Origin: Basidiobolus meristosporus CBS 931.73
Taxonomy: Eukaryota; Fungi; Basidiobolomycota
NCBI GenBank assembly: GCA_002104905.1
Contig: MCFE01000495.1
Coordinates: forward strand, 1 to 64,000
DNA length: 64,000 bases
Direction of reading: 5' to 3'
Shown here: positions 47,223 through 52,328 of the stretch, one piece after another
Numbering within the stretch: the first letter of the stretch is position 1
Layout: each line of letters begins with the position of its first letter
Made by a program: the position numbers and the translations under genes
Notes under the pieces: generated by a model
What the model was told of the DNA's origin: nothing
Database searches by the model: none
What the model saw: only the letters and a program-made list of their open reading frames with translations

Positions 47223-47800
47223 GGAAATTCGGAGGTTATTTTGGCAGCTGGCCATTTTATATAGCCAAAGCTTCTAAACCGGTTGAGTTCCTTTGAAGAA
47301 TACTCTCCGGAAGCCACTTGCCCAATTCGGCGAACTCTGACCAGTTCGTCTACTAAAGAATAATCGTAATTTTCAGCCCCAAAGTGGGCAACACTATACC
47401 AAGGAGAAGTGTATTCCGGACTCACAATTTGTCTGTCAGACTAAGAATTACCAACTGGGTAATGAAAGAATTATATGCATCAATCAGTTACTCTATTAGC
47501 CGCTCGGGGGTAGAGTCTATTTATAGAGAGCTTTTAATATACAAGGCGGGTTTGTTTAGTAGTTTGTGAAATTAACTTATTATTGGCGATTAGTCAACGC
47601 TTAATACCTCTAGGTTGATTTAATTGTTGGAGCTAAATTCGACGGCTGATTCTGGATGTTCATGTATTAAGGTTACTCGTGTATATGTGGTTTTGTCTCG
47701 AGTGTTTTCAATAATGGCCAAATCAACGATCGAGTGAACAACGTTTATTGGGTATAACAGAAATGTTCTAGTATCTATAGTGCAGGAATCAGTTCTACCT

Positions 47801-48475
47801 CTAGTACTTGTATTTGCCATTACCATTACCATTGCCACTATAGTCATCGTAGTCACCTCCACCACCACCACCGCCATACTTCTTACCATGACCATTGCCG
47901 TCATAATCGTCGTAGTCACCGCCACCACCACCACCACCACCGTACTTCTTACCATGACCGTTGCCATCGTAGTCATCATAGTCACCGCCACCACCACCGC
48001 CATACTTCTTGCCGCGGCCATGACCGTCATAGTCGTCGTAGTCACCACCGCCACCACCACCATACTTCTTTCCTTTACCATGGCCATCATAGTCGTCATC
48101 ATAATCGCCGTCGCCACCACCACCGCCATACTTCTTTCCATGGCCATTGCCATCGTAGTCATCGTCGTAGTCACCACCACCACCACCGCCACCATACTTC
48201 TTTCCTTTACCATGGCCATCATAATCATCGTCGTAATCGCCACCACCACCACCGCCATATTTCTTTCCACGGCCGTTGCCGTCGTAGTCGTCGTCGTAGT
48301 CACCACCACCACCGCCGCCGCCATATTTCTTTCCATGGCCATTGCCATTGCCATCATAGTCATCATAGTCACCCACGCCTTTGTAGCCTGGGTCGTAAGA
48401 GCGTTCCATGACTGTAGCGTTGATGGCCAATGCAGCCGAGAGAACAACAAGAAGAGTAGCGCTGGAGTACTTCAT
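47801..48475 (-). CDS. Secreted Gly/Asp/Tyr/Lys repeat protein, copy A (224 aa, 8 KKY repeats)
   Basis: MKYSSATLLVVLSAALAINA signal peptide; repeats DYDD(D)YDG(N/H)G(H/K/R)GKKYGn; ends GKYKY. TATA-like TATATATA upstream; AATAAA downstream. Confidence 0.9.
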   Translation of the reverse strand: MKYSSATLLVVLSAALAINATVMERSYDPGYKGVGDYDDYDGNGNGHGKKYGGGGGGGDYDDDYDGNGRGKKYGGGGGGDYDDDYDGHGKGKKYGGGGGGGDYDDDYDGNGHGKKYGGGGGDGDYDDDYDGHGKGKKYGGGGGGDYDDYDGHGRGKKYGGGGGGDYDDYDGNGHGKKYGGGGGGGGDYDDYDGNGHGKKYGGGGGGGDYDDYSGNGNGNGKYKY

Positions 48476-48487
48476 ATTGAAAGCGTT

Positions 48488-48891
48488 GGAATGTCTTGCC
48501 ACAAGTAGCTATGAGGGATATATATACTATGGCCTGGATGTAGATCCATCCAGTGTAAGCTCCCCTTTGTGTGCAGTATCCTGCATTTCGAAGTGCTGGA
48601 GGCGTGATCGATCAGGATGGTACAGCTGGACAGGTTTCTTCAAATAAACCTTAACAAACACCTGAGTAGATGCTGAGAACCAATGAAGCTGTTAGGGGTG
48701 AGGAGTGTGGACCAAAACCCCATCGTCAGATTTGGTTGAAGTAACCTGTCCAGCTGTACCACCCTGATCGATCACGCCTCCAGCACTTCGAAATGCAGGA
48801 TACTGCACACAAAGGGGAGCTTACACTGGATGGATCTACATCCAGGCCATAGTATATATATCCCTCATAGCTACTTGTGGCAAGACATTCC
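48488..48891. repeat. Head-to-head palindrome: 155-bp promoter arms around the 100-bp segment X (48640-48739)
   Basis: 48488-48642 is the reverse complement of 48737-48891 with about 2 mismatches. Confidence 0.95.
48851..48862 (+). promoter_or_regulatory. TATA-like element of copy B (mirrored for A near 48517-48528; repeated for C near 49887-49898)
   Basis: AGTATATATATC about 45 bp upstream of the ATG, conserved in three copies. Confidence 0.55.
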
Positions 48892-48906
48892 GATTACTTC
48901 TCTAAC

Positions 48907-49497
48907 ATGAAATACTCCAGTGCCACTCTTCTTGTTGTTCTCTCGGCTGCATTGGCCATCAACGCCACAGTCATGGAACGCTCCTACGACCCAGGCTACA
49001 AAGGCGTGGGCGACTACGATGACTATGATGGCAATGGCAATGGCCATGGAAAGAAATATGGCGGTGGTGGTCGTGGTGGTGACTACGACGACGACTACGA
49101 CGGCAACGGCCGTGGAAAGAAATATGGCGGCGGTGGTGGTGGCGATTACGACGATGACTATGACGGCCATGGTAAAGGAAAGAAGTATGGTGGTGGTGAT
49201 GACTATGACGATGACTACGATGGCCATGGTAAAGGAAAGAAGTATGGCGGTGGTGATGACTACGACGATGACTACGATGGCAATGGCCATGGAAAGAAAT
49301 ATGGTGGTGGTGGTGGCGGTGGAGATTACGATGACGATTATGATGGCCACGGCCGTGGAAAGAAGTATGGTGGTGGCGGCGGTGGTGACTACGACGACTA
49401 TGACGGTCATGGCCGCGGCAAGAAGTATGGTGGTGGTGGTGGCGGTGACTATGATGACTACGATGGCAATGGCCACGCCGGAAAATACAAGTATTAG
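48907..49497 (+). CDS. Secreted Gly/Asp/Tyr/Lys repeat protein, copy B (196 aa, 7 KKY repeats)
   Basis: Same architecture as copy A. ATG at 48907, TAG at 49495-49497. Confidence 0.9.
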   Translation: MKYSSATLLVVLSAALAINATVMERSYDPGYKGVGDYDDYDGNGNGHGKKYGGGGRGGDYDDDYDGNGRGKKYGGGGGGDYDDDYDGHGKGKKYGGGDDYDDDYDGHGKGKKYGGGDDYDDDYDGNGHGKKYGGGGGGGDYDDDYDGHGRGKKYGGGGGGDYDDYDGHGRGKKYGGGGGGDYDDYDGNGHAGKYKY

Positions 49498-49675
49498 TGG
49501 TAGACCTGATTCCTGCGCTATAGATACTAGAACAACTCTACTATACCCAATAAACGCTGTTTACCCTATCATATCTATTGAAAGATCACTCTTATTGTGA
49601 ATTCTGAAGAGTGGCTCAAACAAGTGTAAATAACAATCAGAATCGGGTGATCCGATCGACGCTTCCATGTGAACG

Positions 49676-49775
49676 TCAAACAAACCTTAACAAACATCTG
49701 AGTAGATGCTGAGAACCAATGAAGCTGTTAGGGGTGAGGAGTGTGGATCAAAACCCCATCGTTAGATTTGGTTGA
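49676..49775 (+). repeat. Segment X, middle copy, between the terminator of B and the promoter of C
   Basis: Bounded by TCAAACAAACCTTAAC ... GTTAGATTTGGTTGA (imperfect inverted repeat). Confidence 0.9.
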
Positions 49776-49942
49776 AGTAACCTGTCCAGCCGTACCACCC
49801 TGATCGATCACGCCTCCAGCACTTCGAAATGCAGGATACTGCACACAAAGGGGAGCTTACACTGGATGGATCTACATCCAGGCCATAGTATATATATCCC
49901 TCATAGCTACTTGTGGCAAGACATTCCAATCACTTCTCCAAC

Positions 49943-50659
49943 ATGAAATACTCCAGTGCCACTCTTCTTGTTGTTCTCTCGGCTGCTTTGGCCATCAACG
50001 CCACAGTCATGGAACGCTCTTACGACCCAGGCTACAAAGGCGTGGGTGACTACGATGACTATGATGGCAATGGCAATGGCCATGGAAAGAAATATGGCGG
50101 TGGTGGTGGTGGTGGCGATTATGACGATGACTACGATGGCCATGGTAAAGGAAAGAAATATGGCGGTGGTGGTGGTGGCGATTACGACGATGACTATGAC
50201 GGCCATGGTAAAGGAAAGAAGTATGGCGGTGGTGATGACTACGACGATGACTACGATGGCAATGGCCATGGAAAGAAATATGGTGGTGGTGGTGGCGGTG
50301 GAGATTACGATGACGATTATGATGGCCACGGCCGTGGAAAGAAGTATGGTGGTGGTGGCGGTGGTGACTACGACGACTATGACGGTCATGGCCGCGGCAA
50401 GAAGTATGGCGGTGGTGGTGGCGGTGACTATGATGACTACGATGGCAACGGTCATGGTAAGAAGTACGGTGGTGGTGGCGGCGGTGATCATGATGACTAC
50501 GATGGCAATGGTCACGGCAAGAAGTATGGCGGTGGTGGTGGCGGTGACTACGATGACTACGATGGCAATGGCCATGGTAAGAAGTACGGTGGTGGTGGTG
50601 GTAGTGGTGACTATGATGATTACGACGGCAATGGCAACGGCGGAAAATACAAGTATTAG
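49943..50659 (+). CDS. Secreted Gly/Asp/Tyr/Lys repeat protein, copy C (238 aa, 9 KKY repeats)
   Basis: Same architecture. Start codon lies 1036 bp downstream of copy B. Confidence 0.9.
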   Translation: MKYSSATLLVVLSAALAINATVMERSYDPGYKGVGDYDDYDGNGNGHGKKYGGGGGGGDYDDDYDGHGKGKKYGGGGGGDYDDDYDGHGKGKKYGGGDDYDDDYDGNGHGKKYGGGGGGGDYDDDYDGHGRGKKYGGGGGGDYDDYDGHGRGKKYGGGGGGDYDDYDGNGHGKKYGGGGGGDHDDYDGNGHGKKYGGGGGGDYDDYDGNGHGKKYGGGGGSGDYDDYDGNGNGGKYKY

Positions 50660-51115
50660 TGGTAGACCTGATTCCTGCGCTATAGATACTAGAACAACTC
50701 TACTATACCCAATAAACGCTGTTTACCCTATCATATCTATTGAAAGATCACCCTTACTGTGAATTCTGAAGAGTGGCTCAAACAAGTGTAAATAACAATC
50801 AGAATCGGTTGGTCCGATCGACGCTCCGATGTGAACACCAACCAAACCTAACGATGGGGTTTTGGTCCACACTCCCCACCCCTAACAGCTTCATTGGTTC
50901 TCAGCATCTACTCAGATGTTTGTTAAGGTTTGTTTGACGTTCACATGGAAGCGTCGATCGGATCACCCGATTCTGATTGTTATTTACACTTGTTTGAGCC
51001 ACTCTTCAGAATTCACAATAAGAGTGATCTTTCAATAGATATGATAGGGTAAACAGAGTTTATTGGGTATAGTAGAGTTGTTCTAGTATCTATAGTGCAG
51101 GAATCAGGTCTACCA
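50660..51115. repeat. Tail-to-tail palindrome: about 178-bp terminator arms around inverted segment X (50838-50937)
   Basis: 50660-50837 is the reverse complement of 50938-51115 with several mismatches. The spacer is X in reverse orientation. Confidence 0.93.
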
Positions 51116-51841
51116 CTAATACTTGTATTTTCCGCCGTTGCCATTGCCGTCGTAATCATCATAGTCACCACCACCACCACCACCACCGTACTTCTTACCA
51201 TGGCCATTGCCATCGTAGTCATCGTAGTCACCGCCACCACCACCGCCATACTTCTTGCCGTGACCATTGCCATCGTAGTCATCATAATCACCGCCGCCAC
51301 CACCACCGTACTTCTTACCATGACCGTTGCCATCGTAGTCATCATAGTCACCGCCACCACCACCGCCATACTTCTTGCCGCGGCCATGACCGTCATAGTC
51401 GTCGTAGTCACCACCGCCACCACCACCATACTTCTTTCCTTACGCATGGCCATCATAGTCGTCATCATAATCGCCGTCGCCACCACCACCGCCATACTTC
51501 TTTCCATGGCCATTGCCATCGTAGTCATCGTCGTAGTCACCACCACCACCACCGCCACCATACTTCTTTCCTTTACCATGACCGTCATAGTCGTCATCGT
51601 AATCGCCACCACCACCACCGCCATATTTCTTTCCACGGCCGTTGCCATCGTAGTCATCGTCGTAGTCACCACCATCACCGCCGCCGCCATATTTCTTTCC
51701 ATGGCCATTGCCATTGCCATCATAGTCATCGTAGTCACCCACGCCTTTGTAGCCTGGGTCGTAAGAGCGTTCCATGACTGTAGCGTTGACGGCCAAAGCA
51801 GCCGAGAGAACAACAAGAAGAGTAGCGCTGGAGTACTTCAT
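51116..51841 (-). pseudogene. Repeat-protein copy D with an in-frame premature TAA at codon 134 (truncated gene or pseudogene)
   Basis: GGT AAA of paralog A reads GCG TAA at 51440-51445. The frame continues through further repeats to GKYKY-TAG at 51116. Confidence 0.75.
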
Positions 51842-52168
51842 ATTGAAAGAGTTGGAATGATTAGCTAGAAACGGTCACCGCCGGCTTATATATTGTGTAT
51901 GGATGCGGATGGATGCGGATGGATGCGGATGAATGCGGCGAACTCATTCAAACCACATGTAAAGCGAGCAAAATTTAAGGGTGCCAAACATGGCTCAAAT
52001 TACGGTGATCTTGTAGGAGTGCAGCATGATCCGCTGTATGCACCATGTTGATCGAAAAATGCTGTCCCATGCAGTATTGTTAGTCCTATACAGTGACACC
52101 ATAGTAGGTGCAGATCTCCCTGAGTCTGCGATGTGAATCAAATCCAGTGGAGATCTGACTCCAGCATT

Positions 52169-52248
52169 GCCATCCAAACAAACCAGGATGTGCGACGATG
52201 CATATGCCATCCAAACAAACCAGGATGTGCGACGATGCATATGCCATT
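52169..52248. repeat. 37-bp tandem duplication
   Basis: GCCATCCAAACAAACCAGGATGTGCGACGATGCATAT twice, plus a partial third unit. Confidence 0.9.
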
Positions 52249-52328
52249 CAAATGAAGGCAGGCTCTTGACCAGATGAATACACGTGACAAAGATTTATTT
52301 ACGAGATGTGATGAAGAATGGTACAGTG

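Follow-up and report, generated by a model that had tools for sequence, protein, structure and literature searches.

A probable balanced inversion of the two middle units in a tandem gene array of Basidiobolus meristosporus

Introduction

How does a gene array come to contain two palindromes that pivot on the same short segment? This question is raised by a four-gene array of Basidiobolus meristosporus, a fungus that lives in the frog gut. The array encodes a secreted glycine-rich protein, and its genes stand in the order A(-) B(+) C(+) D(-) within the 64-kb window (the whole stretch of DNA analyzed here). A 100-nt segment, X, lies at the center of both palindromes and once more between B and C. 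In the original prediction, X and the short inverted repeat at its ends were taken as a reusable, built-in hinge of amplification or rearrangement, which would tune the dosage and shuffle the promoters and terminators of a secreted-protein family; a site-specific invertible element was named as an alternative. Here, we analyzed the parts of the array, their copy number and orientation, and the sequence of the joins between them.

Results

The product of the array is a Basidiobolus-only secreted protein built of Gly/Asp/Tyr/Lys/His repeats. Gene A (47801..48475, minus strand) encodes 224 aa, with a signal peptide followed by these repeats, and the recorded annotation also gives a product of 224 aa. 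Gene B (48907..49497, plus strand; 196 aa) has three repeat units fewer than C and D, and gene C (49943..50659, plus strand) encodes 238 aa. Gene D (51116..51841, minus strand) has its reading frame interrupted after codon 133 by a TAA stop codon (51440-51442). It is a mosaic, A-like in its 5' part and C-like in its 3' part, and starting at codon position 394, C and D show 2 mismatches in 324 nt. In the 5' UTR and the first codons, A groups with D and B groups with C. All four genes retain a 5' flank with a TATA box and a 3' flank with AATAAA, and, with D carrying a stop codon, the proposed tuning of dosage and shuffling of promoters and terminators finds no support.

No match to the repeat protein was found in Pfam, and a feature search of the ESM Atlas returned a single match at chance level. 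Word-based protein searches identified four B. meristosporus paralogues and nothing else; these searches missed the window's own A and B, so a near-identical donor array could escape them in the same way. Exact-product look-ups with genes A, B and C and with the GT61 neighbor returned this contig alone. The annotated neighbors within 10 kb carry Yos1, PAP2, GT61 or BPSS1860 domains, or none. At the orthologous GT61 locus of B. ranarum, the array is absent within the available 2.7 kb of contig.

In a head-to-tail array of this family, the usual intergenic spacer runs from a 3' flank (F) to a promoter (P), and X is its middle part. The 39-nt core of X has three exact matches and no other in the 64 kb. 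The predicted positions and orientations of X are correct, as is the gene order. Copy 1 (48640..48739, plus strand) is the center of the head-to-head palindrome, copy 2 (49676..49775, plus strand) lies in the native head-to-tail context F-X-P, and copy 3 (50838..50937, minus strand) is reversed and forms the center of the tail-to-tail palindrome. Pairwise, the copies are 94-96% identical and differ by substitutions only. Beyond the array, X is absent from the rest of the window and from two other loci of the family, L001 and L002. Its core was unmatched among JGI metagenome contigs, and an Rfam search of positions 47400-52300 gave no match at E values up to 1.

The promoter P is found in front of A (48476..48639, minus strand; left arm of palindrome 1), B (48740..48906, plus strand; right arm of palindrome 1, with a TATATATA box about 50 nt upstream of the ATG) and C (49776..49942, plus strand). 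P of A agrees with P of B and C from 48493 outward. Similarly, F follows B (49498..49675, plus strand; AATAAA at 49549-49554), C (50660..50837, plus strand; left arm of palindrome 2) and D (50938..51115, minus strand; right arm of palindrome 2), and F of D differs from F of B by 2 mismatches in 178 nt. The spacer parts are 96-99% alike, or 97-99% when a cluster of substitutions beside X in F of C is left aside. The old flanks of the array show similarities of 65-86%: the promoter of D beyond -17 is old and unlike P, and the final ~130 nt of gene A with its 3' flank are old and diverged (80-86% against the other genes).

As predicted, X is bounded at both palindromes by an imperfect inverted repeat of 16 nt (13 matches, 2 mismatches and 1 gap). 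This repeat is real but weak and of chance grade: 92% of dinucleotide shuffles of the 445-nt spacer contain an equally good repeat somewhere. Hairpin formation had been suggested as a check on X; folded as single-stranded DNA with 10 nt on each side, X does no better than its shuffles (z = -0.28; 74 of 200 shuffles equal or better). The association of the repeat with the breakpoints is not due to chance, because an equal repeat exactly at two fixed points 100 nt apart was found at 5 of 18,680 positions in neighboring sequence (~3e-4), and none of these five has identical outer 4 nt.

Palindrome 1 has arms of 164 nt (48488-48651 and 48728-48891; 97%) and palindrome 2 has arms of 626 nt (50224-50849 and 50926-51551; 96%). 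The gap between the arms is 76 nt in both, and both retain a complete X, i.e. its two arms and the 76-nt center. The palindrome arms differ by substitutions only, without indels. Identity steps down sharply at -17 in the A/B palindrome and at C 394 / D 403 in the C/D palindrome; past the step, homology persists at 86-95% across whole genes, as between paralogous units.

One new join (48639|48640) connects the reversed P to the left arm of X, with the right side (X-P-B) native. The other (50837|50838) connects F of C to the reverse complement of the right arm, and here again the right side of X copy 3 (reversed X, F, into D) is native. Both joins sit at the outer TCAA/TTGA (4 nt) of the X arms. 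A strand switch inside the repeat, leaving hybrid arms, had been proposed; the switch does fall at the repeat, but with joins at its outer 4 nt the arms are barely hybrid. The A/B arm is the left arm with one new substitution present in neither parent, and the C/D arm is the reverse-complemented right arm, changed at two sites, of which only one agrees with the other parent.

The locus contains 4 genes and exactly 3 copies each of P, X and F. The shared promoter is missing only from D and the shared 3' flank only from A, and both outer copies are incomplete, D having neither P nor X upstream and A having neither F nor X downstream. These counts, together with the old outer flanks, argue for a balanced inversion and not for amplification. 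Judged by its sequence content, the layout is that of a four-unit tandem array with old edges, in which the middle two units are inverted, balanced and not amplified. The proposed amplification by ODIRA or a DUP-TRP/INV-DUP mechanism is not borne out by this content. In four other loci of the genome (L001, L002, L007 and L008; ~130 kb together with the window), 44 of 44 family copies are head-to-tail.

Rearrangement models were then run on a tandem array as a token simulation, and the resulting order, orientation and counts were compared with those of the locus. The two-switch model returned the observed order and all three X orientations exactly, with 4 genes, 3 P, 3 F and 3 X. Reciprocal exchange within the arms did not yield the observed structure and was off by one X flip, and ODIRA gave 5 genes and 4 spacers. 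The earlier statement that a single inversion between the arms fails to reproduce the X orientations is thus correct for reciprocal exchange but not for a replicative inversion with two switches. Among the candidates tried, ODIRA, DUP-TRP/INV-DUP, breakage-fusion-bridge cycles and a single reciprocal exchange were ruled out by copy number, outer flanks and X orientations.

Clusters of lineage-specific substitutions occur in the spacers solely on the sides that were newly joined. In F of C, 5 C-specific substitutions fall in the final 29 nt adjoining X, compared with 6 in 457 nt farther out (Fisher p = 0.0014), and P of A has 2 A-specific substitutions within 23 nt of X and 0 in the next 124 nt. 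The native-side flanks, including F of B, carry zero lineage-specific changes. Within X itself, copies 1 and 3 have 3 such substitutions each and copy 2 has 1. Position 73 of X is C in copies 1 and 3 and T in copy 2, and this one site suggests that a single X may have templated both, in which case a shared C would be expected. Replicative repair near switches is known to be error-prone (PMC4352052). Alternatively, the clusters could predate the event, as differences among the spacers, or reflect damage that the palindrome centers suffered afterwards.

Discussion

We consider it fairly probable that expansion of a tandem array was followed by a replicative inversion of its two middle units, with two template switches at the X arms. 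From the present structure, we infer a tandem ancestor, a single event and a replicative route. The starting point would have been an old two-gene tandem pair, in which the first gene had a promoter of its own and the second a 3' end and flank of its own. By unequal crossing-over within the region common to both (-17 to +543 from the ATG), the pair would have grown to four units with near-identical spacers, and a single event, guided by the imperfect inverted repeat at the ends of X, would then have inverted the middle two. In this event, a nascent strand moving from D toward A would copy D, F and X, whereupon its 3' end, the right arm of X, would anneal to the similar arm of the X copy lying two units further on. 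The strand would then copy both middle units backwards and pass through the first X a second time; the new 3' end, now a left arm, would anneal to the remaining arm of that distant X copy, and the strand would be extended into P and A. The predicted outcome is A(-) X B(+) X C(+) X(rev) D(-), with genes, promoters and terminators neither gained nor lost.

Joins at the outer edges and the retention of a whole X are as expected if one arm primes synthesis on a look-alike arm. The junction anatomy therefore supports the part of the original prediction in which the short interrupted inverted repeat at the ends of X guides the strand switches that create the palindromic joins. Inversion by two switches between inverted repeats is an established model (PMC8755829). 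Several points weigh against this reading of the locus. A match of 13 in 16 nt with a perfect end of 4 nt is a short landing pad for a switch of ~2.2 kb. In addition, the sorting of A with D and of B with C needs an extra change in the lineage of the middle units, or later exchange within orientation classes. The abrupt ends of the arms (-17; C 394) would also follow from fold-back duplication or a conversion tract.

Such abrupt ends (A/B, -17; C/D, C 394 and D 403) are indeed among the attractions of an explanation by amplification, in which at least two separate hairpin-primed fold-back inverted duplications, or an event of the ODIRA or DUP-TRP/INV-DUP type, start at the X repeat. The substitution clusters also lie on the sides that would be newly synthesized. 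However, later deletions and gene conversion are needed to reach four genes, at least three events in all, and the number of copies is wrong: a 2n+1 triplication is absent, the remainder of the amplicon is missing from the outer copies (P and X at D; F and X at A), and ODIRA on a tandem array predicts the surplus gene and spacer seen in the simulation. For a fold-back tail to rejoin the other broken end, a gene of opposite orientation must already lie there, which would require the inverted order to have existed beforehand. We regard this explanation as unlikely. Balanced content and breakpoints at the outer arm edges would equally result from breakage at the bases of an X hairpin or cruciform, followed by inversion and end-joining at the TCAA microhomology. 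The reciprocal products of such an inversion are one X flip away from the observed structure, and one X would have had to flip during the shattering itself, or afterwards through recombination of one palindrome arm with the other; inverted arms of 164-626 nt could flip the center in this way. Against this stand the three or four breaks, or two events, that are required, the instability of the X hairpin (the same z of -0.28), and the one-sided substitutions over 30-90 nt, which end-joining alone leaves unexplained. It is likewise improbable in our view.

Since X has terminal inverted repeats and every new join coincides exactly with one of its ends, and since these ends were possibly used two or three times, X itself might be functional, either as the site of a site-specific recombinase (an invertible switch) or as a miniature inverted-repeat transposon with ends that served in aberrant transposition, and in either case a reusable hinge. 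This seems very unlikely. X lacks a target-site duplication (its flanks are AACG and AGTA) and, unlike a miniature inverted-repeat transposon, is not dispersed in the window, L001 or L002; the annotated neighbors within 10 kb have no recombinase or transposase domain, leaving the invertible element unsupported, and neither the Rfam search nor the chance-grade repeat favors it. Copies diverged by 4-6% and one dead gene also make recent activity unlikely. An assembly artefact, with PacBio reads or haplotypes misjoined and a plain tandem array as the true locus, has to be considered in view of the PacBio reads underlying the genome assembly (PMC7466969) and of the three versions of another array of the family in it. 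We find this extremely unlikely. The locus is ~15 kb from the end of a 66,642-bp contig, and its arms diverge by substitutions without indels, whereas the arms from a chimeric fold-back read would be identical and joined at a random point, not twice at the two ends of one repeat. Single long PacBio reads should cover the entire 4.2-kb locus.

As to the proposed hinge, a chance-grade repeat, the absence of X from L001 and L002, the uniformly head-to-tail copies elsewhere and the sufficiency of one event all speak against it. The array is most probably a fixed historical rearrangement from long ago, a working hinge is not indicated, and we found no sign of a regulatory device or of an active or adaptive hinge. 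There is only a slight chance that the X arms are a recurrent weak point, used again and again by Basidiobolus arrays, so that nuclei or isolates would still differ in the orientation or copy number of the middle block or of the X loops. If true, expression or dosage of a secreted repeat-protein family could be switched heritably with no dedicated recombinase. The locus would be a natural example of a known replication error, and is nothing new in kind. Its value would lie in showing how, in a single step, two gene-sized palindromes can arise from a head-to-tail array by way of a 16-nt inverted repeat of chance grade in its spacer, with the mutation clusters expected of error-prone template switching still legible. 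It may also serve as a worked example for interpreting palindromic gene arrays, in which balanced content and old outer flanks separate inversion from amplification.

Comparison with known systems places the locus more closely. As in ODIRA, a short interrupted inverted repeat that was present beforehand is kept at the joins, together with the sequence between its halves; ODIRA yields an inverted triplication of 2n+1 complete copies with an origin, whereas here the content is balanced and the remainder of an amplicon is missing at the outer genes. DUP-TRP/INV-DUP rearrangements of human disease loci (PMC4352052) share an inverted middle segment, a join inside inverted repeats and a replicative, error-prone mechanism with point changes near the joins, but they involve kilobase-size inverted repeats and a duplication-triplication-duplication pattern of dosage that is not seen here. 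In hairpin-primed fold-back during large palindrome formation (PMC3907307, PMC4689423), a short interrupted repeat is likewise the palindrome center and synthesis begins at the outer edge of an arm. Fold-back, however, leaves one side duplicated and the other lost or capped, with arms freshly copied from each other; at this locus neither side is missing, and the arms are probably paralogous array units. The two-switch inversions of PMC8755829 are alike in that imperfect inverted repeats bound the inverted segment, the joins lie at the repeat, two switches are required, and the segment is neither gained nor lost. The inverted pieces in that study measure 17-33 nt, and the piece here is ~2.2 kb long and comprises two whole gene units. 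Moreover, unlike in that study, the halves of the repeat come from two different spacer copies of a tandem array, so that one spacer copy would have been written twice and the other lost.

Gene family and spacer layout

The four array genes A (47801-48475, - strand), B (48907-49497, + strand), C (49943-50659, + strand) and D (51116-51841, - strand) are paralogues of one another. Their products consist of a signal peptide, 7-9 units of the form ~G(N/H)G(H/R/K)GKKYGGGGGG-DYDD(D)YD and a short end piece. No Pfam domain matched this repeat protein, and protein searches found only four B. meristosporus proteins as relatives. Gene A is 97.3% alike to D from -17 to +543, B 316-558 is 99.2% alike to C 259-501, and C from 394 through its 3' flank segment (F) is 98.7% alike to D from 403, outside a substitution cluster. 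Gene D carries an in-frame TAA (51440-51442), where three neighbouring bases (D 398-400) have changed together, turning GHGKG into GHA-stop; the 226-aa product in the public record over D (51116-51841) must therefore skip a stop. Over C, the public record places a gene of 246 codons on the opposite strand (49943-50680, - strand). Since the antisense frame of the C repeats is free of stops, giving a Val/Thr/Ile-rich reading, this call is probably a wrong-strand model.

The 100-bp spacer segment X was located by sequence match at 48640-48739 (X1, +), 49676-49775 (X2, +) and 50838-50937 (X3, -), with no further copy in the 64-kb window. The tandem B/C spacer consists of F (the 178 nt behind the stop codon, including AATAAA), X (100 nt) and the promoter segment P (167 nt, including a TATA box), in this order. 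The head-to-head A/B spacer reads reversed P, X, P, and the tail-to-tail C/D spacer F, reversed X, reversed F; in both palindromes the repeat finder places 76 nt between the arms. The inverted repeat that bounds X has a left arm of 16 nt and a right arm of 15 nt, which pair with 13 matches, two mismatches and one gap. Coordinates, orientations, spacer layouts and the bounding inverted repeat all agree with the original prediction.

Balanced content of the array

The array holds four genes, three P, three X and three F. Upstream of -17, the promoter is unlike P in D alone, and in A alone the 3' end diverges past +543 and runs into a flank of its own; the identity of these two regions to the other units is 65-86%, versus 96-99% among the spacer parts. 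This is the content of a head-to-tail array of four units whose edges are old. Unequal crossing-over within the stretch shared by an old pair of genes, from -17 to +543, may have built such an array. All 44 family copies at four other loci fetched from the same genome lie head to tail; X, P and F were absent from the two of these loci that were searched (L001 and L002). Three loci, L002, L007 and L008 (MCFE01000056.1, MCFE01001009.1 and MCFE01001205.1), have the same Pyr_redox/rhodanese gene at the contig start, behind which 13, 15 and at least 11 copies, respectively, are arrayed head to tail; the three are either haplotypes that were not collapsed or recent segmental duplicates that differ in copy number.

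An inverted amplification, as originally proposed, is not supported by this balanced content and the old outer flanks at D and A. Two features define the known mechanism ODIRA: 2n+1 complete copies and the preservation of interrupted repeats (PMC4689423). Acting on a tandem array, it predicts five genes and four spacers, whereas four genes and three of each spacer part are observed. Under ODIRA, D should also have P upstream and A should have F downstream, but both are missing; ODIRA was thus rejected.

A probable repeat-guided inversion by two template switches

Both arms of X are whole at each palindrome. At the new A/B join (48639|48640), reversed P meets the left arm, and X-P-B on the right keeps the native order; at the new C/D join (50837|50838), F of C meets the reverse complement of the right arm, and reversed X and F run into D in native order. 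Exchange took place at the outer TCAA/TTGA that the arms have in common. The predicted hybrid arms hold weakly: the A/B arm is the left arm plus one substitution absent from both parents, and the C/D arm is the complement of the right arm plus two substitutions, of which a single one is shared with the other parent.

The bounding repeat was not reported by a repeat finder with 6-nt seeds, and when 445-nt spacers were shuffled, 92% contained an equally good one somewhere. Taken by itself, the repeat is unremarkable, and any spacer would offer one like it. Of 18,680 positions in nearby sequence, only five had an equally good repeat at two set points exactly 100 nt apart, and in none of these five were the outer 4 nt identical; the repeat therefore did guide the breakpoints. 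Hairpin formation by X found no support, as single-stranded DNA folding of X with 10 nt on each side was no more stable than shuffles (z = -0.28).

Rearrangement models were simulated with signed tokens. The observed X orientations are forward, forward, reverse. Reciprocal exchange between the arms gives reverse, forward, reverse or hybrid loops and was rejected, whereas a replicative two-switch inversion reproduces the observed order and every orientation. The earlier argument that a single inversion cannot yield the three orientations thus stands for reciprocal exchange and fails for the replicative route. In the latter, a strand would copy D, F and X, land on the look-alike arm of the X beside A, copy the middle two units backwards and then the first X again, and finally land on the other arm and go on into P and A. 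The X beside D would be written twice, and that beside A would serve as a landing pad only. At the sole informative site, position 73, X1 and X3 have C and X2 has T. Strand switching at a short interrupted repeat, as predicted, is supported by the joins at arm ends and by this simulation. The array most likely reflects a single, old, repeat-guided inversion of the middle two units, a fresh instance of an already known type of rearrangement; for inversion between inverted repeats, a two-switch model is established (PMC8755829).

Lineage-specific substitutions, assigned with the third copy as outgroup, lie on the newly joined sides. F of C (50660-50837) has five in its last 29 nt and two more at 81 and 86 nt from X, and P of A has two in its first 23 nt and none in the following 124 nt; P of B has none, nor has F of D in the 45 nt next to X. 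X1 and X3 have three each, and X2 has one. Between the C and D arms, five mismatches lie within 45 nt of X versus six in the other 457 nt (Fisher p = 0.0014), and all differences are substitutions. These clusters fit error-prone synthesis around template switches (PMC4352052), but they could also be older spacer differences or later damage at the palindrome centres.

The 5' UTR and first codons group A with D and B with C. To account for this grouping, either one further change in the lineage of the middle units or post-inversion exchange within orientation classes is needed; it is a loose end in the inversion history. In the 17-20 nt before the ATG (48889-48906, 49925-49942, 48476-48492 and 51842-51858), about half of the positions differ between A/D and B/C, with a 3-nt indel, versus about 2% in the adjoining coding sequence, a pattern more like a small complex replacement than a gradual accumulation of changes.

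An assembly artefact is unlikely as the source of this structure, because the array lies about 15 kb from the contig end, its arms differ by substitutions alone and both joins fall at the ends of one repeat. The contig (MCFE01000495.1, assembly GCA_002104905.1) is 66,642 bp long, with 1-64000 covered by the window, and PacBio sequencing was used for the CBS 931.73 genome (PMC7466969).

Functional claims and surroundings

The suggestion of a built-in hinge that tunes dosage and shuffles promoters and terminators is not supported. All four genes retain a 5' flank with a TATA box and a 3' flank with AATAAA, so nothing has been shuffled; no evidence for a dosage role was found, and D is broken by its in-frame stop. 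Nor was there evidence for a site-specific switch: no annotated neighbour of the array has a recombinase domain, and the array has no Rfam match.

The array sits in a gene-bearing stretch of 49% G+C beside a GT61 glycosyltransferase gene. The G+C content rises sharply at about 40 kb, from 36-40% (1-40000) to 44-54% (40001-62000). Upstream of D lie four copies of a 10-nt unit, ATGGATGCGG (51899-51938), and 2.4 near-perfect copies of a 37-nt unit (52164-52252). In B. ranarum (JASJQH010000328.1), the region upstream of the GT61 orthologue (1-2765) is AT-rich, internally duplicated sequence, not a repeat-protein array, and on the downstream side of GT61, SF3b1 and HEAT genes are additionally present between GT61 and PAP2.
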